Assembly: GCF_046119375.1 (NCBI RefSeq)
Contig: NW_027362771.1
Span: 559,736,001 to 559,800,000, forward strand
Direction of reading: 5' to 3'
Origin: Phyllobates terribilis
Lineage: Eukaryota
Length of the DNA: 64,000 nucleotides
Shown: positions 13,001-52,160 of the stretch, one piece after another
How positions within the stretch are numbered: the first letter of the stretch is position 1
How the letters are laid out: every line of letters starts with the position of its first letter
Notes under the pieces: model-generated
Told to the model about the DNA's origin: nothing
The model's database searches: none
What the model saw: only the letters and a program-made list of their open reading frames with translations
Made by a program: the position numbers and the translations under genes

Positions 13001-16000
13001 GGAGGGTTTTGCATCCCCACAGCATGATGATGATGATGATGCTGCTGCTGCTGCTGCTGCTGCAACCACCATGCTACACTGTGGGGATAGTGTTCTTGGA
13101 GTGATGAGCTGTGTTGATTTGGTGGCCAAAAAGTTCAATCTTGGTCTCATCTGACCACAGCTCCTTCCTCTGTACATTTGGGGAGTCTCCACTTGTCTTT
13201 TGGCAAACTCAAAACGAGCCGCACAATTTTTGTGTGAAAGTAAAGACTATTTCTGGCAATTCTTCCATAAAGGCCACCTCTATAGGGTGTACGGCTTATT
13301 GTGGTCTTATGGACAGATACTCCAGTCTCTTCTTGGGTACTCTGCAGCTCCTTTAGGGTCACCTTTTGGTCTCTGTGCTGCCTCTCTGATTAATGCTCTC
13401 CTTGCCCGGGCTCAGAGTTTTGGGTGGGCGGCCCTCTCTTGGCAGGTTTGTTGTGGTACCATGTTCTTTCCATTTGATGATAATGGATTTGATGGTGCTC
13501 CGGGGGATCATCAGATATTGCGATATATTTTTTTTATAATTCAACCCTGACTTGAACTTCTCAACAACTTTGTCCCTGACTTGTTTGGAGGTCTCCTTGG
13601 TCTTCATGGTGGTGGTGTTGTTTGGAGGTCTCCTTGGTCTTCATGGTGATGGTGTTGTTTGGAGGTCTCCTTGGTCTTCATGGTGGTGGTGTTGTTTGGA
13701 GGTCTCCTTGGTCTTCATGGTGGTGGTGTTGTTTGGAGATCTCCTTGGTCTTCATGGTGGTGGTGTTGTTTGGAGATCTCCTTGGTCTTCATGGTGGTGG
13801 TGTTGTTTGGAGGTCTCCGTGGTCTTCATGGTGGTGGTGTTGTTTGGAGATCTCCTTGGTCTTCATGGTGGTGGTGTTGTTTGGAGTCTCCTTGGTCTTC
13901 ATGGTGGTGGTGTTGTTTGGAGGTCTCCTTGGTCTTCATGGTGGTGGTTTTGTTTGGAGGTCTCCTTGGTCTTCATTGTGGTGGTGTTGTTTGGAGGTCT
14001 TATTGGTCTTCATGGTGGTGGTTTGTTTGGAGGTCTCCTTGGTCTTCATGGTGGTGGTGTTGTTTGGAGGTCTCCTTGGTCTTCATGGTGGTGGTGTTTG
14101 TTTTGGAGGTCTCCTTGGTCTTCATGGTGGTGGTGTTTGTTTGGAGGTCCCCTTGGTCTTCATGGTGGTGGTGTTGTTTGGAGGTCTCCTTGGTCTTCGT
14201 GGTGGTGTTGTTTGGAGGTCTCCGTGGTCTTCGTGGTGGTGGGTGTTTGGAGGTCTCCGTGGTCTTCATGGTGTTGTAGCCTCTGTGGCCTTTCAGAAAA
14301 GGTAAAGTGTATATACTGACAGACATGTGACCCTTAGATTGCACACAAGGGGACGTCCTGTCCCTAAGCATGTGACTTATGAAGGTGATTGCTTGCACCA
14401 GACATTTTAGGGACTTCCTAACAAAAGGGGTGAATACAGATGCACATGCCAATTTTTAGTTATTTGATCCCATACATTTTTAATTTATGCCTATATTTTT
14501 CTCACTTCACTAACTTAGACTATTTCGTGCTGATGCGTCACACACAAATCAGATAACAAAAATATTTAATCACAGGTTGTAATGTAACAAAATAGTTAAA
14601 AAAACAAACATGGGGGGTGAATACTTTCGCAAACCACAGTATAATGATTGTGACCTATCAAGTAAGAGCAGCACCTGACATTCCTATGGGTTTGGTTTGA
14701 TAATGTTACAGGGTCTGAATTTTAGCGGAGCCGACCTCTCCCGTCTGGACCTGCGATATATCAATTTCAAGATGGCGAATCTCAGCAGCTGCAACCTGAC
14801 GCAAGCCAACCTGTGTGGAGCCTGCCTGGAGCGGGCCGACCTGTCCGGATCTATGCTGGATGTAAGCTGGGAGGGTGGGATGAGGGGCGCAATGTCGCCT
14901 AATATAAAACCATGGGGTTAGTCTCCCAACCAGAGAGGATTCCTGTGACTGAGAACAGACCGGCTGTGTCCTCTTTATTATTAAGGGTATGTGCACACGA
15001 TGCAGAAATGAAGCAGAAATTTCTGCATCTCCCTGTCAGAAAAAACGCATGCAGATTGACAAGTTATTTCCAGGCGATTTTAGCATCACTTGGAAAGTGC
15101 TTGACGACTAGGTTACACTATATAAATCCATGCAACCAGCATGGATTTATATAGTGTGACCCGAGAGAGTGGTAAAAATAAAAAATAAATGTATACTTTA
15201 CCCTCTGATGGCCCGCGCTGTCCTGCTTTACACTCCGTTCTCCCTCGCCGGCAACTTTGAATTGAAAGACCTGCTGACGTCAGCGTCACGTGACCCGTCA
15301 CATGACTCTGACGTCAGCGCAGGTCCTTCAACTCACTGCAAAGTGCCGGAACCAAGCGGGAGCGGTGCGCGGGCCGACAGAAGGTAAGTATACATTTATT
15401 TTTATTTTATTCTTTTTTTACAGCTTTTTTAATGGTACCTGGGTGTGGATGAGACTCTCCTCTCCTCCACACCCGGGTACCATCCGCATATTAGAACGCG
15501 CCAATAGCGCAAGTACAAATGCAGTCTTGCGGAATTGGCGCATTCTAATGCAAGTCAATGGCGGCAAAAACGCCGCGTTTACGCAAATTAATTGACATGC
15601 TGCGGATTTTTGAGCGCAGTGTTTACGCTGCGGAAAAATGCGCATCATGGGCACAGCACATGCGGATTTCAATTGGGGAACATTGCTGCCCTTCTACCAT
15701 GCGTTTTTAATGCGTTTCCGCGGCGTTTACGCAACTGCAAAACGCCACGGAAACGCATTAAATACGCATCGTGTGAACTCTGCCTAATGGTGTTTTCTTA
15801 CCTAGGGAGCCAATCTGCAGGGGGTGAAGATGCTCTGCTCCAACGCAGAAGGTGCCTCGCTAAAAAGCTGCAACTTCGAAGACCCTTCAGGCCTGAAGGC
15901 AAATTTGGAAGGTTAGAAACCAAGAAATGTCACAATAAGGGGCTGGACAAGGGGTATATAGGCCTCTGCTTAGGGCGCCATTGGTAGGAAAATTGTGCAA

Positions 16001-26625: not shown

Positions 26626-26769
26626 ATGAGCCACCGTGGGACACCATGTTTCCTCCTTATACTTGTTCTCCTCTTGTCTGATCATATGACTTATTCTCAG
26701 CATTGGTCATATGGGCTGCAGCCAGGAGGGAAGCGCGACTTAGAAACACTCCAGGACTCCTATCCAGAG
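26626..26769 (+). CDS. GNRH1: GNRH1 first coding exon (signal peptide, decapeptide at 26698-26727, GKR)
   Basis: atttcag|G ATG AGC...CCA GAG|GTAATA. Confidence 0.96.
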
Positions 26770-29463
26770 GTAATAACAAATGGGATCAAAAGTCACCCCC
26801 TCCCCCCCATACTTATGATGTGTATGGGGGCCTTATCAAGACCAGAACTTTTATCTCGCTAGTGACCATGTTTGCAAATTAGCTCTCCTCCCGGAGGAGA
26901 GTTTGGTCCCTAATGCCATCTATTGGAAGTCGATACCCTATAATTGTCCATAATCAGTGTAGAATAGTGTAAGGATGGCTTTCTGAGATGTGTTTGATGA
27001 TGGTCTAGATCAGGGGTCTCAAACACGCGGCCCGCGGGCCGCATGCGGCCCCTGAGGCTGCTTTATGCGGCCCGCAGGCACAGACCCCTTGATGATCCCG
27101 ACCTGGTCCAGGAGGAGCCGCCGACAGCAGCGCTGCATTGCCGCACAGAGACTGTTTCCCAGCACTGCATTTCCAATGACAGCCGCTGACCAATCAGAGG
27201 CCAGCAGCTGATATCTGCGTGTCGGCGCAGTGAGTATGATGTCATTGCCGTACGCTGATGTCAGCTGCTGGCCTCTGATTGGCCGGCGGCTGACATTGAA
27301 AATGCTGTGCTGGGAGACAGTCTCTGTGCGGCAATGCAGCGCTGCTGTCGGCGGCTCCTCCTGGACCAGGTCGGGATCGTCAAGGGGTCTGACTCTGTGG
27401 TGCCTGCGGGACACATCTGCAGGAAGGCCGCCGAGGGAACGGAGGACAGGTGAGAATCATCTTTTTTTTTTTTATGTGTGTGAAGAACAGCACAGGGGGC
27501 ACATAGCCACAGGACGGGGACCTGGATGGGGCACATAGCCAAAAGATGGGGACCTGGATGGGGCACATAGCCTCAAGAGGGGGACCTGGATGGGGCACAT
27601 AGCCACAAGATGGGGACCTGGATGGGGCACATAGCCTCAAGAGGGGGACCTGGATGGGGCACATAGCCACAAGATGTGGACCTGGATGGGGCACAGAGCC
27701 ACAAGATGGGGACCTGGATGGGGCACATAGCCACAAGAGGGGACCTGGATGGGGCACATAGTCACAAGAAGGGGACCTGGATGGGCACATACCCACAAGA
27801 TGTGGACCTGGATGGGGCACATAGCCACAAGATGTGGACCTGGATGGGGCACATAGCCACAGGATGGGGACCTGGATGGGGCACATAGCCACAGGATGGG
27901 GACCTGGTTGGGGCACATTAGTACAAGATGGGGACATTACTACAAGATGTTTGCCATTATTACTATATGATGCTAATTGTAAGACAATATTACTGAATGT
28001 GGCCAATTGGGGGAAACAAAATTGTAAAAATCAAAAAAATAAAAATAAAGCCTGAAAAAATATTGGGCACTAAAAATGCTGTTTTATATGTAAACTAAAG
28101 TAAACACAAAAAAGTGCACGTTTATTATCGCCACATCCATAACGACCCAAGCTATAAAAAAATAAACATGGCAAAACTGTTCAAAAGGTGTATACAAAAA
28201 AAAATGGTATCACTAAAAATGTCACATTGAACAAAAAATGCGGCCCCCCAAATTCAAATTTTTTCCATTTGCGGCCCATATACCCAGCCGAGTTTGAGAC
28301 CCCTGGTCTAGATGGTCTTATAAGCTTTGCATTGCTCCCTGTGAAAAGAATGTAATAGCTTTCCTCCAGGAGGAAAAATACATCTCATGAGTGGAGTACT
28401 AGACAGGTTTTCACCACTCAATTGCAAAGAGGATGGCATCAGTCAAAGCTAAACCCCCTTTCTCCAAGGACACCATAGCAGTTGAATAGTCTGGGGGTTC
28501 ATATGTCTATATTTTTTAATTTTACTATTTACATTTATTTGATTTTACAAATTTTCTCTTGACTTTATATATAGACTATGCTAAGCTTCCATAAAAATAA
28601 ACTATTAGAAATAGTATATAACTACTTGATACAGTGTTAGCGCTGGTTATGCAATTTGTAGCGCAAGAGGTTTATAATTATAACCTACTTCAGAATGGCT
28701 GTAACTTACCAGTGAAGACCTTGTGTGCAAAAGAAAAAAAAAAGTGGCCTAAGTGTAGACCCCATGGCCAGTCCTGCCCTATTCTCAGTATTATCCATAA
28801 AAAAGTGCAATACAATATATATTACTTGTAATACATAGATAGGCTCAGTTTTTGTATCCATTGACATGACTTTATCCATCTAGACTAGAGCATGGGCTGT
28901 CTTTGTTCATTTCTTAGACTCAGAATGAAGTTTCCTTGTTCACAGAGCCAAAGCGTCTTGAGTGTTTCCTGCCACAAAACAGACTTAGCATCATGAGGGG
29001 AGCTTTGGTGAGTTGGGGAAAAGATTCCCAGCCCTGTGAAAAAAACCATCTTACCATATAGCATACTTATTAGTGATAATACTTGCATTTATTACATACT
29101 CTTTTTCACTGTATCAGTGGTAACCTTCCAGCTTGTTTGCGCAACTAGGCTTATTGTGGTACCGTTTTGGCTTTTAATTCTTTAATTAGTATGGTGATAT
29201 TTAGATAAAACACACAACACAAGGGGAGCTCAAAGGAACTTTAAAAGGTGGCCATGCTGGGGATGGTTTTAGCTTAGACTGGAGTTGTGTTGCAATAAAG
29301 AAACTGATGGATTGGCAAAGTAGTATAAAAGCCAAAAGTTACATGCATTTTATAGATTTCATCCATTGGGATGTAATTACACAGTACATATTTGAACTTT
29401 ATGGTATTTTTTGACTTACAGATGAATTGGCTGGAGGGAGAAAATGGCAGAAAGAAGATGTGA
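26626..29463 (+). CDS. GNRH1: Progonadoliberin-1 (prepro-GnRH1), 91 aa; coding exons 26626-26769, 28918-29007, 29422-29463
   Basis: 24-aa signal peptide, [13 protein letters not shown] processing site, then GAP ([11 protein letters not shown]|[30 protein letters not shown]|[13 protein letters not shown]). Lies between KCTD9 and DOCK5, the conserved GNRH1 position. Confidence 0.96.
27011..28305. mobile_element. Non-autonomous hAT-type element in the GNRH1 intron after the decapeptide exon
   Basis: TIRs CAGGGGTCTCAAAC / GTTTGAGACCCCTG; perfect 8-bp TSD GTCTAGAT at 27003-27010 and 28306-28313. Confidence 0.92.
27495..27915. repeat. 32-bp minisatellite, about 13 copies, inside the hAT element
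   Basis: Unit GGGGCACATAGCCACAAGATGGGGACCTGGAT; CCTGGAT recurs at 27521, 27553, 27585, 27617. Confidence 0.92.
28918..29007 (+). CDS. GNRH1: GNRH1 GAP middle exon
   Basis: ttcttag|ACT CAG AAT...GCT TTG|GTGAGT; 90 nt. Confidence 0.92.
29422..29463 (+). CDS. GNRH1: GNRH1 terminal coding exon
   Basis: ttacag|[16 protein letters not shown]; resembles the amphibian GAP C-terminus. Confidence 0.92.
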   Translation: MNWLEGENGRKKM

Positions 29464-30136: not shown

Positions 30137-30428
30137 CAGCACAGTGAGGAGTCAGGTTACACCTCTTATGTAGGGAGGTGAGAGGAACAAATCAGCACAG
30201 TGAGGAGTCAGGTTACACCGCTTATGTATAAAAGGTGAGAGGAACAATCAGCACAGTGAGGAGTCAGGTTACACCGCTTATGTATAAAAGGTGAGAGGAA
30301 CAATCAGCACAGTGAGGAGTCAGGTTACACCTCTTATGTATAAAAGGTGAGAGGAACAATCAGCACAGTGAGGAGTCAGGTTACACCTCTTATGTATAAA
30401 AGGTGAGAGGAACAATCAGCACAGTGAG
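30137..30428. repeat. 56-bp tandem repeat, about 5 copies
   Basis: CAGCACAGTGAGGAGTCAGGTTACAC...GAGAGGAACAAT starts at 30137, 30193, 30249, 30305, 30361, 30417. Confidence 0.95.
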
Positions 30429-30881
30429 AGACCAGACAGACTGTGTGCAAATTGCCTCTTCAGAGAGGATGAAGTCTTGAACTCAAGCACCACTGATTGG
30501 AAGTAACAATCCTAAAAGTCAATATCGACTCTTTAACGAGCCTTGCCACATGACTTGGGATAAAATCCAAAGCAGAATCTCTATTTGCAGACACGTTTCA
30601 GGATGATGCCCCTCCTCAGTGCAAAACAGGAGCTCTGATTGGGCTGTGCGAGAGACCTCTGACTGGGGTCTAAGGGGTAATGTCTCTCTTTAAGGAGCCC
30701 TCCTATATATGGGGGTCCTCAGAAATGGAGACAGGTGACAAAGTAGTGGTGGGCAGACATATTTGCTTTGAATAACATTATGATCAGCCTCTCTTCAGCC
30801 TGAAATGGATGAAAACAGAGAATAATAGTCTTTTCCAATTTAGATAACCATATATTACATTTAGCATAAATATAATGTATA

Positions 30882-33800
30882 CACTGTGTGCAGAATTATT
30901 GGCTCAGTGAGTATTTTGACCGTATCATAATTTTTACGCAGATTTTCCAGCTTCGAGCTGTATAAAGGTGAATGATTATTTGATGGCGCTGACCAGGTGA
31001 TGTGTAATGAGGGGGTGCAGACTAAGGATACAACGCCCTTTATCCAGGGGTGCAGGATTGTTAGGCAGCTTCTTTTCCTCAGGCAAAATGGGCCAAAAGA
31101 TCTAACCGAGTCTGAAAAGTCACAAATTGTTACAAGTCGTACAGAGGATGCAGCACTCTAGAAACTCCTCCGATATTGGGGCGATCACAGAACCAGCAAA
31201 CGCTTTGCTACAAATAGTCAAAAGGAAGCAAAAAATGTGCTGAGAAATAAAGACGCAGATTATATCCCCAAATATCTGAGAAGAATCAAACGTGAAGCAA
31301 CAAGGAAGCCATTATCCTCCAGAGCTGAATATTCCATAACTACAGCCTCCCTGGAGGCCAGAAGTACAAGATGGTCAGTGCTCAGAGACACGGCCGAGGT
31401 GAGGAGGCTGAGCCCGACCACCACTGAGCAAGACACAGAAGTACAAGGTGTTCAGTGCTCAGAGACACGGCCGAGGTGAGGAGGCTGAGCCCGACCACCA
31501 CTAAGCAAGACACAGAAGTACAAGGTGTTCAGTGCTCAGAGACATGGCCGAGGTGAGGAGGCTGAGCCCGACCACCACTGAGCAAGACACAGAAATACAA
31601 GGTGTTCAGTGCTCAGAGACACGGCCGAGGTGAGGAGGCTGAGCCCGACCACCACTGAGCAAGACACAGAAGTACAAGGTGTTCAGTGCTCACAGACACG
31701 GCTGAGGTGAGGAGGCTGAGCCCGACCACCACTGAGCAAGACACAGAAGTACAAGGTGTTCAGTGCTCAGAGACACGGCCGAGGTGAGGAGGCTGAGCCC
31801 GACCACCACTGAGCAAGACACAGAAGTACAAGGTGTTCAGTGCTCACAGACACGGCTGAGGTGAGGAGGCTGAGCCCGACCACCACTGAGCAAGACACAG
31901 AAGTACAAGGTGTTCAGTGCTCAGAGACACGGCCGAGGTGAGGAGGCTGAGCCCGACCACCACTGAGCAAGACACAGAAGTACAAGGTGTTCAGTGCTCA
32001 CAGACACGGCTGAGGTGAGGAGGCTGAGCCCGACCACCACTGAGCAAGACACAGAAATACAAGGTGTTCAGTGCTCAGAGACACAGCTGAGGTGAGGAGG
32101 CTGAGCCCGACCACCACTGAGCAAGACACAGAAGTACAAGGTGTTCAGTGCTCACAGACACGGCTGAGGTGAGGAGGCTGAGCCCGACCACCACTGAGCA
32201 AGACACAGAAGTACAAGGTGTTCAGTGCTCAGAGACACGGCCGAGGTGAGGAGGCTGAGCCCGACCACCACTGAGCAAGACACAGAAGTACAAGGTGTTC
32301 AGTGCTCAGAGACACGGCCGAGGTGAGGAGGCTGAGCCCGACCACCACTGAACAAGACACAGAAGTACAAGGTGTTCAGTGCTCAGAGACACGGCCGAGG
32401 TGAGGAGGCTGAGCCCGACCACCACTGAGCAAGACACAGAAGTACAAGGTGTTCAGTGTTCAGAGACACAGCTGAGGTGAGGAGGCTGAGCCCGACCACC
32501 ACTGAGCAAGACACAGAAGTACAAGGTGTTCAGTGCTCAGAGACACAGCCGAGGTGAGGAGGCTGAGCCCGACCACCACTGAGCAAGACACAGAAGTACA
32601 AGGTGTTCAGTGCTCAGAGACACGGCCGAGGTGAGGAGGCTGAGCCCGACCACCACTGAACAAGACACAGAAGTACAAGGTGTTCAGTGCTCAGAGACAC
32701 GGCTGAGGTGAGGAGGCTGAGCCCGACCACCACTGAGCAAGACACAGAAGTACAAGGTGTTCAGTGCTCAGAGACACGGCCGAGGTGAGGAGGCTGAGCC
32801 CGACCACCACTGAGCAAGACACAGAAGTACAAGGTGTTCAGTGCTCAGAGACACGGCCGAGGTGAGGAGGCTGAACCCGACCACCACTGAGCAAGACACA
32901 GAAGTACCAGGTGTTCAGTGCTCAGAGACACGGCCGAGGTGAGGAGGCTGAGCCCGACCACCACTGAGCAAGACACAGAAGTACAAGGTGTTCAGTGCTC
33001 AGAGACACGGCCGAGGTGAGGAAGCTGAGCCCGACCACCACTGAGGAAGACACAGAAGTATAAGGTGTTCAGTGCTCAGAGACATGGCCGAGGTGAGGAG
33101 GCTGAGCCCGACCACCACTGAGCAAGACACAGAAGTACAAGGTGTTCAGTGCTCAGAGACACGGCCGAGGTGAGGAAGCTGAGCCCGACCACCACTGAGG
33201 AAGACACAGAAGTATAAGGTGTTCAGTGCTCAGAGACATGGCCGAGGTGAGGAGGCTGAGCCCGACCACCACGGAGCAAGACACAGAAGTACAAGGTGTT
33301 CAGTGCTCAGAGACACGGCCGAGGTGAGGAGGCTGAGCCCGACCACCACTGAGCAAGACACAGAAGTACAAGGTGTTCAGTGCTCAGAGACACGGCCGAG
33401 GTGAGGAGGCTGAGCCCGACCACCACTGAGCAAGACACAGAAGTACAAGGTGTTCAGTGCTCAGAGACACGGCCGAGGTGAGGAGGCTGAGCCCGACCAC
33501 CACTGAGCAAGACACAGAAGTACAAGGTGTTCAGTGCTCAGAGACACGGCTGAGGTGAGGAGGCTGAGCCCGACCACCACTGAGCAAGACACAGAAGTAC
33601 AAGGTGTTCAGTGCTCAGAGACACGGCTGAGGTGAAGAGGCTGAGCCCGACCACCACTGAGCAAGACACAGAAGTACAAGGGGTTCAGTGCTCAGAGACA
33701 TGGCTGAGGTGAGGAGGCTGAGCCCGACCACCACTGAGCAAGACACAGAAGTACAAGGTGTTCAGTGCTCAGAGACACGGCCGAGGTGAGGAGGCTGAGC

Positions 33801-36800
33801 CCGACCACCACTGAACAAGACACAGAAGAACAAGGGGTTCAGTGCTCAGAGACACGGCCGAGGTGAGGAGGCTGAGCCCGACCACCACTGAACAAGACAC
33901 AGAAGTACAAGGTGTTCAGTGCTCAGAGACATGGCCGAGGTGAGGAGGCTGAGCCCGACCACCACTGAGCAAGACACAGAAGTACAAGGTGTTCAGTGCT
34001 CAGAGACATGGCCGAGGTGAGGAGGCTGAGCCCGACCACCACTGAGCAAGACACAGAAGTACAAGGTGTTCAGTGCTCAGAGACACGGCCGAGGTGAGGA
34101 GGCTGAGCCCGACCACCACTGAGCAAGACACAGAAGTACAAGGTGTTCAGTGCTCAGAGACACGGCCGAGGTGAGGAGGCTGAGCCCGACCACCACTGAG
34201 CAAAACACAGAAGTACAAGGTGTTCAGTGCTCAGAGACACGGCCGAGGTGAGGAGGCTGAGCCCGACCACCACTGAGCAAGACACATTAGTACAAGGTGT
34301 TCAGTACTCAGAGACATGGCCGAGGTGAGGAGGCTGAGCCCGACCACCACTGAGCAAGACACAGAAGTACAAGGTGTTCAGTGCTCAGAGACACGGCCGA
34401 GGTGAAGAGGCTGAGCCCGACCACCACTGAACAAGACACAGAAGTACAAGGTGTTCAGTGCTCAGAGACACGGCCGAGGTGAGGAGGCTGAGCCCGACCA
34501 CCACTGAGCAAGACACAGAAGTACAAGGTGTTCAGTGCTCAGACACGGCCGAGGTGAGGAGGCTGAGCCCGACCACCACTGAGCAAGACACAGAAGTACA
34601 AGGTGTTCAGTGCTCAAAGACACGACCAAGGTGAGGAGGCTGAGCCCGACCACCACTGAGCAAGACACAGAAGTACAAGGTGTTCAGAGACACGGCCGAA
34701 GTGAGGAGGCTGAGCCCGACCACCACTGAGCAAGACACAGAAGTACAAGGTGTTCAGTGCTCAGAGACATGGCCGAGGTGAGGAGGCTGAGCCCGACCAC
34801 CACTGAGCAAGACACAGAAGTACAAGGTGTTCAGTGCTCAGAGACACAGCCGAGGTGAGGAGGCTGAGCCCGACCACCACTGAGCAAGACACAGAAGTAC
34901 AAGGTGCTCAGAGACATGGCCGAGGTGAGGAAAACTGAACCCGACCACCACTGAGCAAGACACAGAAGTACAAGGTGCTCAGTGCTCAGAGACACAGCCG
35001 AGGTGAGGAGGCTGAGCCCGACCACCACTGAGCAAGACACAGAAGTACAAGGTGCTCAGAGACATGGCCGAGGTGAGGAAAACTGAACCCGACCACCACT
35101 GAGCAAGACACAGAAGTACAAGGTGTTCAGTGCTCAGAGACACAGCCGAGGTGCTGAGGCTGAGCCCGACCACCACTGAGGAAGACACAGAAGTACAAGG
35201 TGTTCAGTGCTCAGAGACACGGCCGAGGTGCTGAGGCTGAGCCCGACCACCACTGAGGAAGACACAGAAGTACAAGGTGTTCAGTGCTCAGAGACACGGC
35301 CGAGGTGAGGAGGCTGAGCCCGACCACCACTGAGCAAGACACAGAAGCACAAGGTGTTCAGTGCTCAGAGACACGGCTGAGGTGAGGAGGCTGAGCCCGA
35401 CCACCACTGAGCAAGACACAGAAGTACAAGGTGTTCAGTGCTCAGAGACACGGCTGAGGTGAGGAGGCTGAGCCCGACCACCACTGAGCAAGACACAGAA
35501 GAACAAGGTGTTCAGTGCTCAGAGACATGGCCGAGGTGAGGAGGCTGAGCCCGACCACCACTGAACAAGATACAGAAGTACAAGGTGTTTAGTGCTCAGA
35601 GACACGGCCGAGGTGAGGAGGCTGAGCCCGACCACCACTGAACAAGTCACAGAAGTACAAGGTGTTTAGTGCTCAGAGACACGGCCGAGGTGAGGAGGCT
35701 GAACCCGACCACCACTGAGCAAGACACAGAAGTACAAGGTGTTCAGTGCTCAGAGACACGGCCGAGGTGAGGAGGCTAAACCCGACCACCACTGAGCAAG
35801 ACACGGAACTACAAGGTGTTCAGTGCTCAGAGACACGGCTGAGGTGAGGAGGCTGAGCCCGACCACCACTGAACAAGTCACAGAAGTACAAGGTGTTTAG
35901 TGCTCAGAGACACGGCTGAGGTGAGGAGGCTGAGCCCGACCACCACTGAGCAAGACACAGAAGAACAAGGTGTTCAGTGCTCAGAGACATGGTCGAGGTG
36001 AGGAGGCTGAGCCCGACCACCACTGAGCAAGACACAGAAGTACAAGGTGTTCAGTGCTCAGAGACACGGCTGAGGTGAGGAGGCTGAAATCCGACCACCA
36101 CTGAGCAAGACACAGAAGTACAAGGTGTTCAGTGCTCAGAGACATGGTCGAGGTGAGGAGGCTGAGCCCGACCACCACTGAGCAAGACACAGAAGTACAA
36201 GGTGTTCAGTGCTCAGAGACACGGCCGAGGTGAGGAGGCTGAGCCCGACCACCACTGAGCAAGACACAGAAGAACAAGGTGTTCAGTGCTCAGAGACATG
36301 GTCGAGGTGAGGAGGCTGAGCCCGACCACCACTGAGCAAGACACAGAAGTACAAGGTGTTCAGTGCTCAGAGACATGGCCGAGGTGAGGAGGCTGAGCCC
36401 GACCACCGCTGAGCAAGACACAGAAGTACAAGGTGTTCAGTGCTCAGAGACACGACCAAGGTGAGGAGGCTGAATCCGACCACCACTGAGCAAGACACGG
36501 AAGTACAAGGTGTTCAGTGCTCAGAGACATGGTCGAGGTGAGGAGGCTGAGCCCGACCACCACTGAGCAAGACACAGAAGTACAAGGTGTTCAATGCTCA
36601 GAGACACGGCCGAGGTGAGGAGGCTGAGCCCGACCACCACTGAGCAAGACACAGAAGTACAAGGTGTTCAGTGCTCAGAGACATGGTTGAGGTGAGGAGG
36701 CTGAGCCCGACCACCACTGAGCAAGACACAGAAGAACAAGGTGTTCAGTGCTCAGAGACATGGTCGAGGTGAGGAGGCTGAGCCCGACCACCACTGAGCA

Positions 36801-39800
36801 AGACACAGAAGTACAAGGTGTTCAGTGCTCAGAGACACGGCCGAGGTGAGGAGGCTGAGCCCGACCACCACTGAGCAAGACACAGAAGAACAAGGTGTTC
36901 AGTGCTCAGAGACATGGTCGAGGTGAGGAGGCTGAGCCCAACCACCACTGAGCAAGACACAGAAGTACAAGGTGTTCAGTGCTCAGAGACATGGCCGAGG
37001 TGAGGAGGCTGAGCCCAACCACCACTGAGCAAGACACAGAAGTACAAGGTGTTCAGTGCTCAGAGACACGGCTGAGGTAAGGAGGCTGAGCCCGACCACC
37101 ACTGAGCAAGACACAGAAGTACAAGGTGTTCAGTGCTCAGAGACACGGCTGAGGTGAGGAGGCTGAGCCCGACCACCACGGAGCAAGACACAGAAGTACA
37201 AGGTGTTCAGTGCTCAGAGACATGGTCGAGGTGAGGAGGCTGAGCCCGACCACCACTGAGCAAGACACAGAAGTACAAGGTATTCAGTGCCCAGAGACAT
37301 GGCCGAGGTGAGGAGGCTGAGCCCAACCACCACTGAGCAAGACACAGAAGTACAAGGTGTTCAGTGCTCAGAGACACGGCTGAGGTGAGGAGGCTGAGCC
37401 CGACCACCACTGAGCAAGACACAGAAGTACAAGGTGTTCAGTGCCCAGAGACACGGCCGAGGTGAGGAGGCTGAGCCCGACCACCACTGAGCAAGACACA
37501 GAAGTACAAGGTGTTCAGTGCTCAGAGACATGGCCGAGGTGAGGAGGCTGAGCCCGACCACCACGGAGCAAGACACAGAAGTACAAGGTGTTCAGTGCTC
37601 AGAGACATGGCCGAGGTGAGGAGGCTGAGCCCGACCACCACTGAGCAAGACACAGAAGTACAAGGTGTTCAGTGCTCAGAGACACGGCCGAGGTGAGGAG
37701 GCTGAGCCCGACCACCACTGAGCAAGACACAGAAGTACAAGGTGTTCAGTGCTCAGAGACATGGCCGAGGTGAGGAGGCTGAGCCCAACCACCACTGAGC
37801 AAGACACAGAAGTACAAGGTGTTCAGTGCTCAGAGACACGGCCGAGGTGAGGAGGCTGAGCCCGACCACCACTGAGCAAGACACAGAAGTACAAGGTGTT
37901 CAGTGCTCAGAGACATGGCCGAGGTGAGGAGGCTGAGCCCGACCACCACTGAGCAAGACACAGAAGTACAAGGTGTTCAGTGCTCAGAGACACGGCCGAG
38001 GTGAGGAGGCTGAGCCCGACCACCACTGAGCAAGACACAGAAGTACAAGGTGTTCAGTATTCAGAGACATGGCAGAGGTGAGGAGGCTGAGCCCGACCAC
38101 CACTGAGCAAGACACAGAAGAACAAGGTGTTCAGTGCTCAGAGACATGGCCGAGGTGAGGAGGCTGAGCCCGACCACCACTGAGCAAGACACAGAAGAAC
38201 AAGGTGTTCAGTATTCAGAGACATGGCAGAGGTGAGGAGGCTGAGCCCGACCACCACTGAGCAAGACACAGAAGTACAAGGTGTTCAGTGCTCAGAGACA
38301 TGGTCGAGGTGAGGAGGCTGAGCCCGACCACCACTGAGCAAGACACAGAAGTACAAGGTGTTCAGTGCTCAGAGACACGGCTGAGGTGAGGAGGCTGAGC
38401 CCGACCACCACTGAGCAAGACACAGAAGTACATGGTGTTCAGTGCTCAGAGACACGGCCGAGGTGAGGAGGCTGAGCCCGACCACCACTGAACAAGACAC
38501 AGAAGTACAAGGTGTTCAGTGCTCAGAGACATGGTCGAGGTGAGGAGGCTGAGCCCAACCACCACTGAGCAAGACACAGAAGTACAAGGTGTTCAGTGCT
38601 CAGAGACATGGCCGAGGTGAGGAGGCTGAGCCTGACCACCACTGAGCAAGACACAGAAGTACAAGGTGTTCAGTGCTCAGAGACATGGCCGAGGTGAGGA
38701 GGCTGAGCCCGACCACCACTGAGCAAGACACAGAAGTACAAGGTGTTCAGTGCTCACAGACATGGTCGAGGTGAGGAGGCTGAACCCAACCACCACTGAA
38801 CAAGACACAGAAGTACAAGGTGTTCAGTGCTCACAGACATGGTCGAGGTGAGGAGGCTGAACCCAACCACCACTGAACAAGACACAGAAGAGGAAACATC
38901 AAGACTGGGCCAAGAAATATCCGAAGGCAGGTTTTTCAAAGGTTTTATGGACTGATGTGATGAGAGTGACTCTTGGCGGACCAGATGGATTGGTCCATGG
39001 CTGGATAAGTAATGGGTAGAGACCTCCACTTCCACTCAGATGCCAAGGAGGTGGAGGTGGGTACTGCTATGGGTTGGTATTATTAAAGATGAGCTAGTTG
39101 GACGTTTCAGGTAGAAGATGGACTCAAAATCAACTCCCAAACCTACTGCCAGTTTTTAGAGGACACTTTCTTCAAGCAGTAGTACAGAAAAAAAGTCTGC
39201 GTCTTTCAAGAAATCCATGATATTTCTGCAGGACAACTCTCCATCGCATCATTGAAGTCTCCACTGCTCAGCTGCCAGTAACGGCCTTAACGATGAAAGA
39301 GTAATGGTCCGGGCCCGTTCCTCACCGCAACTAAACCCTACTGAGAACTTGTGGGACCTTCTTGAATGGGAGAATTACGATGAAGGGAAACAGTCACCTC
39401 TCTGAACAGTGTCTTGGACTGTGGTTGGTGCTGCCCAAAAAGTGGATCGTCAACAGATGAAGAAACTGGCAGACTCCATGGATGGAGCTTATGACTTATT
39501 GAGAAGAAGGGGCGGCTATGGTACTATATTAGTCACTAATATTTTTGCGACATGTCAGAAATATATTTTTGTAGATTTTGCATTGTTGGTTATTATTCTC
39601 ACTGTAATAGATGAACATAAACAATTGAGATGGAATTTTTTTTTTTTTTTTTAGTTTTTCATTTAGTTACATAATAATTCTGCACACAGATATTCTCCTA
39701 AAAAAGACAAAACCTCACTTTTACTTTTGTTAAATATTCAGGTTTCAGATTTATTAATCTTTGGGAATGACCGGCAGCGCTGGAGTTATTCAATAATAAT

Positions 39801-39848
39801 AAATTAATCATCAAAAATACAAATTGCCTGATAATTGTGCAGAAAGTG
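30882..39848 (+). mobile_element. Tc1-like transposon inflated to about 9 kb by an internal satellite
   Basis: TA|CACTGTGTGCAGAATTATT left end; ...TTGCCTGATAATTGTGCAGAAAGTG|TA right end, with an inner copy AATAATTCTGCACACAG near 39673. Degenerate transposase from ATGGGCCAAAAG at 31088 resumes after the array (AAGACTGGGCCAAGAAATATC...TTATGGACTGATG). Confidence 0.88.
31360..38890 (+). repeat. 77-bp tandem satellite, about 98 copies, about 7.5 kb
   Basis: Unit AGAAGTACAAGGTGTTCAGTGCTCAGAGACACGGCCGAGGTGAGGAGGCTGAGCCCGACCACCACTGAGCAAGACAC; starts at 31360, 31437, 31514, ... 38886. Confidence 0.98.
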
Positions 39849-40221
39849 TATACACAGGTGAGATGATAAAACTGAAAGGAAACACGAAGGAGACGGAGGT
39901 GGTTTGAGGATTTTACAATATCACGCAGTCCCATATGTACAAATTCCGATTACAATATTAACACGTATAGACGTGAAGGACGAGCCATCTACAAGGAGAG
40001 GACATCCCTCCCAGTTTATCAAGTCTTTTCTCCGATCGGATAAAATCTTCATTTATCTTAGTACTTAGAGCTCGCACTCAATAGACGGGCTATTGATCCA
40101 GAAGGTGATGCCACCATACTGGACAGTGGAGATCCACAAAGTGTCCATCACGATATCCAGACTAGGTGGGACATCACATGGGTTAAGGTTGGCCTGAAGA
40201 TGTATCAGGTCCTAAGACCCA

Positions 40222-43300: not shown

Positions 43301-46300
43301 CCATCTTAGCTATTCACATGACCACAATAACCTGAAAATCTTATTTATCAGGTTATTTAGTGTGAAATGCAAACAGTACAAAAAATGCAATAAAAAAAAA
43401 CCCAGAACATTGATGAAAATTGTCTTTTCTACATCCATGCCACAAAAAAATAGTGATTCAACAAGGCCAAAATAGCATGGTCATTAAGGGGTGAACCCAG
43501 TTCTCGATTTAAAGGCCTTCTATGGTATAATACATGGACATTCTCTGGAGCCAGAGTGACTCTTGAAGAAGTCCTAAAAAAAAAGTAAAAATTAAAAAAA
43601 GTATGAAAGTCCGATTGTCCTATACTTACTATGGGTTCTTGGAGTTTGGGGAGTGATCGGGGAAGGAATAAGAGGCGTTATCCCTGGATTTGTGGAGCTG
43701 CTGTGGAGGGTGAGACGGTTATCCGAAAGCTGAAGGCTCTTTGGTCGCGTTTTGGCAGACAAGCTCTGGGAATACATTGGAACCAGAACAGAGTAGATAA
43801 AGTAGATGAGGTGGCAATAAACTTGACATGACCCATGATCGATCCTGTTGACCTAGCCCAGATCTCCTGTCGCACACAATCCCGTCACTTCTCACCTCTT
43901 TTTCCCCCGGGCGCTCTGTGATGGTTTGAGATTGGCTGACGTTTCGCTTCAGTTTCATTGGTCTGATATCACCGTCGTCTCGGTCGTTGTGTTCTTCATG
44001 CCGGGAGATGAGGGATCCACGACGAGGAGGTACAGGTTCTGGAAGTGACCTAAGAACAAGTGGGGAATTCTTTAAATATGGAGAGGTCAACCTGGTAATC
44101 ACTCAATGTCAAGCAGCTGCTGCAAAAGCAAGCATTATTTTAGGAGATGTGTTTTTCAACCTAGGTAACTATGTAAGATCAAAATGTAATATTACCCCAC
44201 TATAAACCCCTTTAAGATCCAAATGCTGGGCCCTACCCCTAAGCTGTTGTGTTCTGGCACAGAATACTGTAAATTCCCTAATTCCTTATTGCAGGATCCC
44301 TGTTGTCCATGGCAAAACAAAACGATAGTGGTCTTTGCAACCATGAAGCTCAAGACGTTGGCAATTATGTGACTTACCCATGGGACTGCTTCCAAACCAG
44401 CAACGTCTTCTGTGAAGGCAATGCATGTGCAGATGTGGGAGATTTTGCTGGAGTCTCCATATATGCATTAAAACCATCTCAGTCAGCCAATCAAATCAAT
44501 TTTCTCTACTAACAAGAATCAAAAACCTACCCTTCCGAGCCCGGTCTGGAGCTCCCGCTTCCTGAAGAAGAAGAGGAAGACACAGTAGACAACCTTCTTA
44601 GAGTGGCAGATGTGATATATGGAACAACCACAGAGCCGGCACGACTCAGTTTCCTGTCTGTGAGGCTGGAAGGCTGAAGTAGAGTAAGGAATAGTTGTCT
44701 TAGACTATTATGGTCCATTCTGATGTTTCTCCAACGTTCCAGAATCTACTGGACTCTTACCAAAGTGATTGTCCCATACAGTTTTTCCACCTTTCTCCTC
44801 AGGTTCTGGAAACAGGACACAAGTCTCTCATGAAGAGGCCGGAGGTTCTCGGTCAACTTCTCTCCATGGATCCTGATTCCTTGAGCCAGAAGAGGCATCT
44901 GGATGGAGACAAAGCAGAAGAAAAGACATAAAAATTGAATGATACAGTGAGTAGAATGAAAAAATGATAAAATTGATCCCAAAAAAGTGTAGGCCAAGAC
45001 GTGTAGTGTCATCTCCTGTCGACACCACCTGGATTCGTACCTGCAGAGCAATCAGCTGTTTAAGAAGCTCAATCTTGTCCTGGTCTCCAGGATGTTCTTG
45101 CAGGTAGCGCTCCGTAAAGAAAGCCTATGAGAGATGAGGAGGTGTAATCAGTAATGGCTTGTGAAGAAACAGGACAGAGGAGGACATACAAGAGCTCTCC
45201 AAATTTCAAGATTGCAGAAGTGCAACCTGTTTACATAAAAGTAATAATCTGCATAAAACGTTGAGTCACTTTGTAAATACATTATTTTTCTGCGAGGGTC
45301 AGGATTTACAAGCCTGTAATGTACTCCAGAGCTGAATTCACAATTCTGCAAATTTCTGAGCTGAAATCTCCCAGAAGTTTATACTGAGTTTGTTCTGGTG
45401 ATATGCCTTCTAAGAACCAAGCCCTGAACCTGTCCGGCTGGATTACAGTGGTTGAGGGCAGCTGTTTGGAATGTGTTTAACGAGCTTGAGTCCAATAACA
45501 ATGAGCAGAACACGGAGTGCAGCTCTGGAGTATAAGAGATTGGTCACCTGTAAAGATTTGCCCTTAAAAAATGCCATAGAAAATAAAGAGAAAGCTGCAA
45601 GGTAATTCACAGTGGTTATTCAGTAACAATAAAAAAATTATATGTACTAGCTACTGAACCCGTTCTAAGCCCGGGTGGCGAGCATTTTTATTGGTATATG
45701 GTCTCCCATGCTGGTATGTGCTGCTCCCCTCCTGGTATTTGTGCTGCCCCCATCCTATCCCTACCATCCTATCCTGGTATGCATAGCACCCCTCACCCAC
45801 AATCCCGGTATGCGTGGCACCCCTCACCCACAATCCCGGTATGCGTGGCACCCCTCGTCCCCAATCCCGGTATGCGTGGCACCCCTCGTCCCCAATCCCG
45901 GTATGCCTGGCACCCCTCGTCCCCAATCCCGGTATGCCTGGCACCCCTCGTCCCCAATCCCGGTATGCCTGGCACCCCTCGTCCCCAATCCCGGTATGCC
46001 TGGCACCCCTCGTCCCCAATCCCGGTATGCCTGGCACCCCTCGTCCCCAATCCCGGTATGCCTGGCACCCCTCGTCCCCAATCCCGGTATGCCTGGCACC
46101 CCTCGTCCCCAATCCCGGTATGCCTGGCACCCCTCGTCCCCAATCCCGGTATGCCTGGCACCCCTCGTCCCCAATCCCGGTATGCCTGGCACCCCTCGTC
46201 CCCAATCCCGGTATGCCTGGCACCCCTCGTCCCCAATCCCGGTATGCCTGGCACCCCTCGTCCCCAATCCCGGTATGCCTGGCACCCCTCGTCCCCAATC

Positions 46301-49300
46301 CCGGTATGCCTGGCACCCCTCGTCCCCAATTCCGGTATGCCTGGCACCCCTCGTCCCCAATTCCGGTATGCCTGGCACCCCTCGTCCCCAATCCCGGTAT
46401 GCCTGGCACCCCTCGTCCCCAATCCCGGTATGCCTGGCACCCCTCGTCCCCAATCCCGGTATGCCTGGCACCCCTCGTCCCCAATCCCGGTATGCCTGGC
46501 ACCCCTCGTCCCCAATCCCGGTATGCATGGCACTCCTCGTCCCCAATCCCGGTATGCATGGCATTCCTCGTCCCCAATCCCGGTATGCATGGCACCCCTC
46601 ACCCCCCCAATCCTAGTATGCGTGGCCCCCTCATCCCCCAATCCTGGTATGCGTGGCCCCCTCACCCCGCAATCCTGGTATGCGTGGCCCCCTCACCCCG
46701 CAATCCTGGTATGCGTGGCCCCCTCACCCCGCAATCCTGGTATGTGTGGCCCCCTCATCCCTTTCACACTGTACACACATACAAAAAAATTAATAGTTAT
46801 ACTTACCTTTCTTCTCTGTGCTCCAGTGCTGCGGAGGAGGAGTACGGCTCCGGAGCACCGCGCTGTCCGGCGCCATTTTGCTGAAGACACAAATGGCGCC
46901 GGATAGCGTTATGCGCATGCGCCAATCCGACGCCTCACTCCTGTCCCGGTCTCCGGCGAAGAATGGCGCTGCGGCAACGCTCCTCCCGGTCAGGTAAATA
47001 TGGTGCTGGAGATCGCGGTATGCGTTCAGTGTCTACGCATACTGCGATCTCTGGCGCCATACACACTGCTCTTACCTGTAATGGCTGGATAAGTTCTTCT
47101 GTCTGGAGCCAGACTGTGGATCACGCATGCACAGTCTATGGAGGCTTCAGACAGAGACACGTATCCCCGGTTATATTATAGATGCACACCTCATGTGGCA
47201 CTGCTAGCTTGGCCCCAAGTTAGTCTCTTTATATAGGCCACGAGCAATGATATCCCATTATATTTGACCGCTGCAACAAAAGACAGTGTACAAAGACCAG
47301 AGGGGGACCATGGACCTGCCATCTCGAAATCTGGACAGGAAATCCACAACAATTCTGGTATATGTGAACATATCCTTTAACATGTAATAACCCAGTATCT
47401 GTACAGGATATGTACTGTATGTACCAGAACAATAGTGAGTGCAGCTCTGGAGTATAATACAGGATAAGTAATATAATGTATGTACACAGTGACTGCACCA
47501 GCAGAATAGTGAGTGCAGCTCTGGGGTATGATACAGGATGTAACTCAGGATCAGTAATGTAATGTATGTACACAGTGACTGCACCAGCAGAATAGTGAGT
47601 GCAGCTCTGGGGTATAATACAGGATGTAACTCAGGATCAGTAATGTATGTACACAGTGATTCCACCAGCAGAATAGTGAGTGCAGCTCTGGAACATGATG
47701 CAGCTCAGGATCAATAACAATCAGTATAATATTTTACAATCAGAGTAATATTTTATAAGTGGAAGAACAATTTCTGGGTAGAGAAATGTAAGAGCATGGT
47801 TCCACTGGTGATATCAGAGCCTATACCCGAGTGACGATTATGGATAACCCCTCCTGTCACCAGGCTCAGCCCCCACAATACTGCACACGGATATTGTTGG
47901 CACATGGGGAACACGCAGAGATTGAGATGTTGATGGCTGTTACCACCTTTTCATAGTTGGAGAATCCGCCCATGACGGCAGGGTCCACGATCCCATTGAG
48001 CAGCATGGAGAGCGGGTGCAGGGGCAGGCCGGGGTCCGCACGGTGCTGCTGGACCTGGTGACTGATCTTCTCATTCGTCAGTTCCATGGTCTCGATGGCG
48101 TTCTGTAATGGGCTGATCTCCTCCTGTGGGAATATCAGAAACATGGCCGCTTGCATCAGTCGCACTGAGGGTCTCCCCTCTGGTACACCACGGCTGATTT
48201 ACACTCTGAAGACTGTTTAGGACCCCCCCCCCCCCAGAAGTTGTCCTGCCGAGAGCAGCGTCCGCTATGGACAGGTTTGCTGCCTGTGAATGGAAACAGC
48301 TGTGTTCTCATTCACTGACACCAAACATGTCTGCAAAAGAGTGAAGAAATCAGGTTTCAAGATGGACCAATATATTTTTATATCCTCGCTGAGAATGTAA
48401 TGTGAGGACATATTCGTTCGTCTCCTTACTGTGTGCAAATGCTTTACTTCAAACCACTTCAGCATGCCGGGCAGCTTGTACGCGGTGGTGAACGTTGTCC
48501 TCTCGATCCACATGGTCTGTGGGGTAAAGAAGGGGGCCAGCATGGCAGGCGTTAATCAGGCGGTCACGTGTCAGCAGAGAACAGCAGTATATAATGATAG
48601 CCCGAAGTACCGCGCCCCCAAAAGAGGTTCTACGCTGGCCGCCAGAGTCAGCAAAGGGGGCACGCCAGCCGCCACAGGTCAAAAGAGGGGGCAGGCCGGC
48701 CGCCACAGTCAATAGAGGGTGCAATCTGGCCACCACAGTCAATAGAAGGTGCAATCTGACCGCCATAATCAATAGAGGGAGCACGCTGTCCACCACAGTC
48801 AATAGAGGGGGCACACTGACCATCACAATCAATAGAGGGGCACTCTGGCCGCCACAGTCAATAGAGGGGGCAATTCGGCTGCCACAGGTCAATAGAGGGG
48901 ACACGCTGGCTGCCACAGTCAATAGAGGGGGCTACCCAACTGCCACAGGTCAATACAGGGGGCACGCCGGCCGCCACGTGTCAGCAGAGAACAGAAGTAT
49001 ACATTGATAGAAATGTCACATCAGCCCAAAGTACCGCGCCCCCAAAAGAGGTTCTATGCCGGCAGCCACAGTCAGCAAAGGGGGCACGCCGGCCACCACA
49101 GGTCAATAGACGGGCCAACCCAACTGACAGAGGTCAATACAGGGGGCACGCCAGCCGCCACTGTCAATAGAGGGTGCAATCTGACCGCCAAAATCAATAG
49201 AGGGGGCACACTAACCATCACAATCAATAGAGGGGGCAATCTGGCCGCCATAATCAATAGAGGGGGCACTCTGGCCGCCACAGTCAATAGAGGGGGCAAT

Positions 49301-52160
49301 TTGGCTGCCACAGTCAATAGAGGGGACACGCTGACCGCCACAATCAATGAGTGGGCAATCTGGCCACCATAATCAATAGATGGGGCACTCTGGCCGCCAC
49401 AGTCAACAGAGGGGGCACGCCGGCTGCCACAGTCAATAGAGGGGGAAACCCAACTGCCACAGTGAATAGAGGTGGCACTTCAGCCGCCACAGATCAATAG
49501 ATGGGTTGCTCCGGCCACCATAGGTCAATAGAGGGGGGCCGCCGGCCGCCACATTCAATAGAGGGGGCTCTCTGGCCGCCACAGTCAATAGAGGGGGCTT
49601 TCCGGCCGCCACAGTCAATAGAGGGGGCAACCCAACTGCCACAGGTCAACAAAGGGGGCACGCCACAGAAAACAAGGAGGGGACTCTGGCTGACACAGTC
49701 CCTTAGGGTGAGGGGGGTGTTGCCTCTGTTGACACAGTCATTGGGGTTGGGTATCTACGGATGACACATTCTTACAGCAAATTCATTGTCAGGATCTTTC
49801 TCTCCTTTTCGGAACGGCCTGGAATAGGAAAAGCTGTGCACCTCGTTGAAGCGATAGTAACTGCAGGAGAAGAAAGGAGACCGGTTACCCATGGCGGAGG
49901 CAGATATTACAACCTTACAGGACTGGCTCCTTGTGTCTGACATAGGAGGGAAACAGCGCCCACCTGAGGATCTGATCGGGCACCAGCTTGTCCTTATATC
50001 GGGGAGGGAGGTTCATTAATGGCTTCACACTGAAGCACTGCACATCTGAAGAATTACTCAAGGAAATAAATCAGAAAGATGTTTAGAGGCGTTCGAGCTC
50101 CTTATCTGATGTAGAGCTCCAAATCCCCTGTAGTGCCCTTAAATGATGAAATTCTGGCTACATGCTGCCACCACTAGGTGGCGTTTTATTGTATGCAGTT
50201 CCCTTTGAGCTCAATAATTAATGTCTACAGTAAGCTCACTAGCTCCCTCTTGTGGCAGATGTAGGCAGTAACAATTTAATTTTTGAGATTACGACTACAC
50301 AGCGTATTTGGTCACACAATGTGAAGATCTAGTGGTCGATGTAATGGTGTTGCGAACATCACCGGCGAAATAAGGCATTGTAATTGATCGGCTGCTCTCC
50401 AGAGTAAAAGAACGCTCGCCATGGCCGTCATTCACTATGGCTAACAGACGAGATCCTGATTGGAGGACCCCCAGGGGGTACCAGAGTTAGGATACATTGC
50501 TTGGGGGAGTTTCTGATGTCATCTCCTGGCGGGGAGCTGCTGGACAGCTTCTCTGCGTTGGGGAACTGGGTCAGAAGCCAAAGGTTAAAATCTTCGAGTC
50601 GTTCATATTCCTTTCCCCGGTGTACAAAGACCTTGTTCTGCAGGAGGGAGAGAGCGAGGATTTTATGGGAGTGATGAGACTATGGAGGGAGGAAGAATAA
50701 TGGGTATAGAGGGGTGCGGAGCTTACCCGTAAGAAGGAAGGGAATCCCTGGCCATAGTATCCCACCGCAAAGTACTCCGGCTGTAACCTCAAGGAGCGCA
50801 TGATGTTCTGGTAGAAGCCGGCCTGTTTATTCTAAGGACATGGAGAGGTCAATGGTTACAGGTGCCGCGATGTGAACGTGGCACGTAGGCATCTGCCCGC
50901 TGACACATTGCTGCTGACACTAAGGGTTATTTCCAGAAAAGAAAATTATTTCCTATACATAAAATAGGGAATAACTGGCTGATCACTGGTGGTCCGAGCA
51001 CTGGGACAGGAGGGATTTTAAGATGGGGGCTCTGCAGCCCTATTGTGGTACCTGCCAGGAATCTGTGCGTGCAGCGCTCTGCTACATCCTGTGCACACTG
51101 AATCGATAGGAGGTTCTAGATGGCACAGCAGAGGTTCTGGATTCTGTCGCAGAGGTTCTAGATTCTGCAGCTGCAGAGGTCCTAGGTGGCGCAGCAGAGG
51201 CTCTAGGTGGTGCATCAGAGGCCCTAGGTAGTGCAGCAGAGGTCCTAGATTCCGCCACAGAGGTTCTAGATGGCGCAACAGAAGTTCTAGGTGACACAGC
51301 ACAGGTTCTAGGTGGCGCAGCAGACATACTAGATGGCGCAGCAGAGGTTCTAGATGGTGTTACAGAGTTCCATTCTCAGGGTTCTAGAACCCCAGTCTTG
51401 GGATCTTTTCAGGGTCCCCATGGTTGCTTTCCCTGCGATCATCAAATCATCCACTATCCATATAACTTCTTCTTTTGAGAACAACCCTTTAATATGTGAG
51501 CACCCAGCCCTGTGCCAATGTGTCAGAAAATGGAACCTAATACTTGTCAAAGCTGAGGTTTTGCTACAATTATATACAACCATGGCTTGATACATTGTAG
51601 AACCAACCCCCCCCCCCCCCCCTCCCCCCGGTAGAGAGATATTTTTTTCTGTGATGTTTTTAGCTGAGACAGATGCCTAGACTGGATACACTGCAGCAAA
51701 CTCTCAGCTGTGAAAAGTATTAAAGGGGTGATCTCATCAGCTGATCACTCGAGTCCAGCCAAGAGGTCGTAGCAGCTGTAATGTCGTATTAGCGGCCGTA
51801 CAGAAGAACGTATCACGGGGACCGCTCCAGTCCTCCAGAACAGAAGCCGCCTGTCTCCATTATGGCTGATAGGGAGGACGGTCGTGAGACAGCAGAGCCA
51901 GATTCCCTGGTTCCACAGCCCCGTTCTCGGATCACTCGGGGTCCCAGTGGTTGGACCACCAACAATCAGAAAGGTATCCCCTATTTTATGGATGGGAAAT
52001 AACTCACTAGCTTGGGAATAGCCTCCTTTAAAGACAGTAGAGGGATTTAGCCTCTGGATGTAAATGTTACAATTCACTCACAGCAAACAGACATGGAAAA
52101 GAGATCAAAAGTCCTAAAACCTTTCATTAGGAAACGCAGAAGCCTTAGTCACATAAGTAG

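Follow-up and report, generated by a model that had tools for sequence, protein, structure and literature searches.

A probable in-place origin of a 98-unit tandem array from a transposase segment of a decayed Tc1 element in the golden poison frog

Transposable elements (TEs) are an established source of tandem repeats. Among human minisatellites and satellites, at least 23% are TE-derived and expand by local duplication of the unit (PMC3389668), and the donors that have been reviewed comprise ORF2 of long interspersed nuclear elements (LINEs), long terminal repeats (LTRs), miniature transposable elements with inverted repeats (MITEs) and Helitrons; for Tc1/mariner, the entries are miDNA4, a MITE from a frog, and the Bari1 cluster of whole elements (PMC9659126, PMC6947457, PMC12054243). 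Here, we describe a Tc1 element that carries a long array of 77-bp units inside its transposase pseudogene. It lies in a 64,000-nucleotide stretch of the genome of the golden poison frog, Phyllobates terribilis (contig NW_027362771.1, positions 559,736,001 to 559,800,000 of the forward strand), which is called the window below and in which all positions are counted from the first letter. Judged from the sequence of this locus and of its relatives, the array was probably born in place from a segment of the transposase gene. An initial annotation of this DNA had proposed that the array came from an internal transposase segment of the same Tc1 copy, and our analysis supports that proposal, as the two flanks belong to one element and both breakpoints are readable. 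With a Tc1 transposase coding segment as its source and both flanks kept, the array is a tidy new example of TE-derived tandem repeats, not a new kind.

Tandem Repeats Finder reported a single array at 31359-38890, with a period of 77, 98.1 copies, 95% matches and a score of 13602. Splitting this array at the unit start gave 98 units, of which 92 are exactly 77 bp long and the others 70-78 bp. The figure of about 98 copies given initially was thus confirmed, at 7.5 kb as assembled, and the array sequence is free of undetermined bases (N). A search of the 64-kb window with a 32-nt core of the unit, allowing up to three mismatches, returned 92 matches, compared with 0 expected from shuffled sequences; all of them fall within the array, and by this core pattern search the 77-bp unit is not present elsewhere in the window. 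No open reading frame (ORF) longer than 71 aa was found in the array on either strand. The product is most likely a non-coding minisatellite-type array, seen at one locus and lacking a function, and for a single locus of 7.5 kb we prefer the cautious term ‘minisatellite-type array’ to ‘satellite’, which strictly calls for high abundance in the genome or for long arrays at several loci or in heterochromatin.

The source of the unit was identified through relatives of the flanking gene. Used as query in a profile-free search, the 93-aa open piece at 31162-31440 led to Tc1 transposase fragments, and a full-length transposase of 338 aa (P0011) was found among the cluster mates of the matched fragments. 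When P0011 was compared with the window by tblastn, its residues 5-110 matched 31096-31407 and its residues 95-335 matched 38809-39519. These two matches overlap at residues ~95-121, and the overlap is the 77-bp unit. That the transposase continues past the last unit, as had been noted initially, is borne out by the translations, by tblastn of P0011 and by alignment to a related DNA contig (L001; see below). The short open pieces of the pseudogene themselves gave no useful Pfam hit, and domains were assigned via P0011, in which Pfam places HTH_23 at residues 11-42, HTH_Tnp_Tc3_2 at 67-134 and DDE_3 at 140-287. The unit therefore covers the second HTH domain in its C-terminal half and runs into the start of the linker; its translation (RSTRCSVLRD...) represents the end of the DNA-binding region. 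The initial description of the unit as the linker after the HTH region holds for the linker start, but half of an HTH domain belongs to the unit as well.

In the relatives, this segment occurs once. It is single-copy in the proteins P0002, P0004 and P0007 (...PRSTRCSVLRDMAKVR.AETRPPLNKTHK...), and another protein, P0005, contains exactly one unit between its flanks: residues 21-102 align to the left flank plus unit 1, and residues 77-123 to the last unit plus the right flank. At the DNA level, L001, a contig from a metagenome assembly in ENA that is presumably host DNA, runs unbroken from flank through unit to flank, at identities of 81% (left part) and 88% (right part). In its alignment with the frog locus (alignment A2), no bases are lost or gained at either junction. 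The comparison was restricted to positions 41-640 of L001. Positions 1-40 of the contig resemble an Illumina adapter and positions 640-1149 are unrelated sequence, and the contig may be chimeric. A further candidate, P0001 (647 aa, on a 522-kb ENA contig), was the top match with 11 stretches and gave the appearance of another array derived from this Tc1 segment. It was rejected: against a canonical transposase it gave an E value of about 0.9 and no alignment, and it is a predicted protein made of ~55-aa tandem units, a chance match that ranked first because weak scores were summed over 11 repeats.

The features of the locus, in order along the window, are as follows.

30880-30881, no strand: left TA target-site duplication, from direct sequence reading.
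30882-31087, plus strand: left terminal repeat of the inverted repeat/direct repeat (IR/DR) type, with its outer copy at 30882-30909 and its inner copy at ~31044-31071, from pattern search and alignment A1.
31088-31358, plus strand: 5' part of the transposase pseudogene, corresponding to residues 1-94 of the full-length relative and containing the HTH domains, with one in-frame stop and at least three frameshifts, from translations, tblastn of P0011 and 81% DNA identity to L001.
31359-38884, plus strand: 98 tandem 77-bp units, each corresponding to transposase codons ~95-121 with a 2-nt deletion.
38885-38890, plus strand: CAGAAG, a 6-nt direct repeat that closes the array and is the same as the 6 nt with which every unit begins.
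38891-39530, plus strand: 3' part of the transposase pseudogene, corresponding to residues ~122-335 and containing the DDE domain, with at least three in-frame stops and at least six frameshifts, from translations and tblastn of P0011.
39630-39848, minus strand: right IR/DR terminal repeat, with its inner copy at ~39664-39691 and its outer copy at 39822-39848, from pattern search and alignment A1.
39849-39850, no strand: right TA target-site duplication, from direct sequence reading.

The breakpoints are marked by a short direct repeat. Every unit starts with CAGAAG, and one further CAGAAG closes the array before the gene resumes with AGGAAACATCAAGAC; by our own estimate, the chance of such a 6-nt extension beyond whole units is about 1 in 4000. 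The short boundary homology AGAAG that had been seen initially is therefore real, and is one base longer. In L001, the left site reads CAGAAG and the right site CATAAG, which means that the direct repeat was nearly present in the family and is perfect in the copy that bears the array. At 6 nt, it falls within the range of the Haber-Louis model, in which a region lying between direct repeats of 5-20 bp gains a copy by slippage or unequal exchange and which has been applied to 300 human TE-derived arrays (PMC3389668).

The element around the array spans 30882-39848, starting with CACTGTGTGCAG after one TA and ending with ...AAAGTG before the other. Comparison of the left end with the reverse complement of the right (alignment A1) brings an outer and an inner copy of a ~20-nt motif into register, ~165 bp apart on each side, and the inner right repeat was recovered by pattern search also. 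On its TA duplication, the layout of its terminal repeats and the domains of its transposase, the element is classified in the Tc1/mariner superfamily, in the IR/DR group of Tc1. The terminal inverted repeats (TIRs) and the TA at both ends that were initially reported are thus borne out by direct reading, and, because both ends share the same IR/DR layout, the flanks are those of one element and not of different Tc1 families, the case that the initial annotation had named as fatal to its proposal. Two of its other statements need correction. When the 97 extra units are taken out, the element measures ~1.52 kb rather than ~1.4 kb, and its description of the parent element as still intact cannot be upheld: the colinear path through the transposase gene contains at least four in-frame stops and at least 10 frame changes (translations and tblastn of P0011), and the right outer end departs from the left at ~6 of 25 bases. 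The contexts of the D, D and E motifs of the DDE domain are still recognizable, and what survives of the parent is only the ends and the TA duplication. Mobilization of the array as cargo, which had also been suggested, is possible in principle only; nothing supports the idea, and a Tc1 that is decayed and 9 kb long would make a poor substrate for transposition.

One of the frameshifts dates the array relative to the decay of the gene. A 2-nt deletion relative to L001 is common to every unit, and P0005 is read in the same shifted frame as the units. Since all units share this deletion, amplification postdates the frameshift, and the gene had already been broken by the time the array began.

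Variation among the units is consistent with growth at the locus. The units fall into 59 types, with the consensus itself represented by 17 units. The mean difference from the consensus is 2.3% and the mean pairwise difference 4.1%, or 2.8% outside CpG positions, three CpGs accounting for 68 of the 164 differences. Variants form local two-unit patterns (units 5-11, 22-25, 47/49 and 88/90), two-unit stretches being duplicated locally, and exact repeats inside the array reach 307 nt at most, at an offset of 154; the array holds no multi-kb exact block of the kind that mis-tiling would suggest. Divergence is greatest in the last two units, which retain T33, A54 and A70, states that have been lost from the array interior. 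Their states at these three positions match L001 and the M and N residues of the relatives, and it is the interior that is derived. The variant pattern is typical of arrays evolving in place and fits what unequal exchange predicts, and the divergent last units fit the behaviour of array edges that escape homogenization.

The sequence of events that we propose begins with an old, non-autonomous Tc1 copy of the IR/DR type, which would have inserted at a TA and whose transposase gene was frameshifted before the array began. In that copy, a stretch of 77 nt (codons ~95-121) would have lain between two CAGAAG hexamers, and a slip between these hexamers, whether by replication slippage, misaligned repair or exchange, may have given the first tandem duplicate. 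Growth to ~98 units with partial homogenization would then have followed through unequal sister-chromatid exchange, slippage and conversion, as the variant pattern suggests. A single-stranded dimer of the unit folds only modestly better than shuffled sequences (z = -2.8), and we therefore do not argue for hairpin-driven expansion.

Several points weigh against this account and have to be set beside other explanations of the locus. The initial slip is itself beyond observation, and the 6-nt repeat is short; conversion after the first duplication could have sharpened the match between the hexamers. Moreover, the published draft genome of P. terribilis is an Illumina assembly whose gaps were filled with 4.8x PacBio coverage (mean read 5.1 kb) and which was then polished with short reads (PMC12208295). 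Should the window stem from that draft, few long reads may underlie the array, and its unit variants may have been altered by the polishing with short reads. It is accordingly conceivable that the array is real while its assembled size or its unit variants are products of assembly, through gap filling with few noisy long reads or mis-tiling and subsequent short-read polishing. The low PacBio depth of the published draft (PMC12208295) and three runs of N in the window speak for this explanation, which we nevertheless regard as quite unlikely, since the array has no multi-unit exact block beyond the 307-nt repeat, its variants show the ordered local patterns and edge gradients of real arrays, and the great majority of its units agree exactly in length.

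Birth in place must also be distinguished from inheritance of the array by a whole Tc1 subfamily, in which the array would have arisen once in a master copy and spread by transposition, so that the present locus would be one of many. The TIRs and the TA duplication are present, as this would require, and repeat-carrying MITEs of the Tc1/mariner type are known in frogs, miDNA4 being the example cited (PMC12054243, PMC9659126). Against this stand the single-copy state of the segment in every relative recovered and the condition of the element itself, which is 9 kb long, has decayed ends and contains a dead gene. Transposition of the Sleeping Beauty type drops steeply with element size. In addition, a 61-aa ORF peptide spanning two unit junctions was unmatched in a collection of 5.8 billion proteins, although this is weak evidence, as contigs from short reads rarely hold such arrays. 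On the relatives recovered, a subfamily that carries the array is very improbable. The last explanation, that an unrelated satellite was inserted in a Tc1 or that two different Tc1 copies came to lie around a pre-existing satellite, deserves almost no credence: the unit is colinear with the transposase gene in both DNA and protein, both ends have the same IR/DR layout, and the junctions show neither loss nor addition in alignment A2, which excludes an independent satellite insertion. In-place birth from the transposase segment thus remains the reading that we prefer.

The genomic neighbourhood of the element is rich in tandem repeats. An exon of GnRH1 at 26626-26770 (plus strand) encodes the signal peptide, the decapeptide (26698-26727) and GKR, with a GT donor at its end. 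The Tc1 with its array lies ~4.1 kb downstream of this decapeptide exon, on the same strand. An array of 5.2 copies of a 56-bp unit (97% matches), a unit unrelated to the 77-mer, occupies 30137-30428, about 450 bp upstream of the place where the Tc1 inserted. Further minisatellites in the window have units of 37 bp (19 copies, 13581-14273), 32 bp (14 copies, 27496-27935) and 31 bp (32 copies, 45771-46761), and there are also arrays of 30/60/90 bp (48637-49665) and 122/244 bp (62539-63013), among others. A second, unrelated fragment of a Tc1-type transposase at 59979-60293 (plus strand) matches residues 231-336 of P0011 with 39% identity; it has an in-frame stop and carries no array. Tandem arrays, the 77-bp array included, occupy ~19% of the 64-kb window, and Tc1 elements make up ~7% of the reads in P. 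terribilis (PMC12208295), so some arrays inside Tc1 copies are to be expected by chance. The broader idea of an excess of tandem arrays seeded by Tc1 copies in the golden poison frog, far beyond what the share of Tc1 in the genome would predict, is one that we consider doubtful, and a plainer alternative to Tc1-linked seeding is that the genome is array-prone everywhere. If such an excess were nonetheless real, a process linked to Tc1 would be indicated, for instance misaligned gap repair following attempted excision, which would turn dead transposons into kilobase arrays and add measurably to a genome of 12.6 Gb.

The locus offers a clean teaching case, in which the product can be read at one place together with its donor, the hexamer that brackets it and the two breakpoints, and the relatives that lack the array supply the ‘before’ state. 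No new mechanism is learned from it, and the birth of the array was ordinary and the array itself is probably functionless. For annotation the case has practical value, as such arrays inflate and fragment frog assemblies and risk being mis-called as satellites or as repeat proteins. It would also provide one data point toward a genome-wide count of the frequency and places at which Tc1 copies produce arrays in very large frog genomes.

In comparison with known systems, the closest parallels are the TE-derived arrays that were amplified in place (Ahmed and Liang, 2012, PMC3389668; PMC6947457, PMC9659126), with which this locus shares local amplification and remnants of the element that still flank the array. 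It also shares with them the short direct repeats at unit boundaries and the local duplication of the unit (PMC3389668). The initial annotation had presented the readable origin as unusual, and this was overstated: amplification in place has been documented at scale for TE segments that lie between short direct repeats (PMC3389668). The differences lie in the donor, which is here a coding segment of a frog Tc1 transposase whereas the tabulated coding-region cases are mostly LINE ORF2, and in the extent of amplification, as there are 98 units here while most human cases have two (PMC3389668).

Among class II elements, miDNA4, a Tc1/mariner MITE of Xenopus tropicalis, and DTC84 of the clam Donax (PMC3879986) are likewise bounded by TIRs and have a tandem repeat inside. 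These two are short, non-coding and present in high copy number, and they take their repeat along with them (PMC3879986 for DTC84), whereas the repeat described here is a piece of an ORF in a copy of full-length type; furthermore, and unlike the situation in miDNA4 and DTC84, the relatives of this Tc1 copy lack the array. The Bari1 cluster of Drosophila melanogaster, with ~80 tandem copies, is similar in that Tc1-family sequence forms a long tandem array, but its unit is the whole element (PMC9659126), while the unit here is 77 bp from inside the gene. Finally, the element resembles Sleeping Beauty and the IR/DR group in its TA target, in its ends of ~200 bp, each with an outer and an inner repeat, and in the two HTH motifs and the DDE domain of the transposase, and differs from them in that the copy studied here is a pseudogene.

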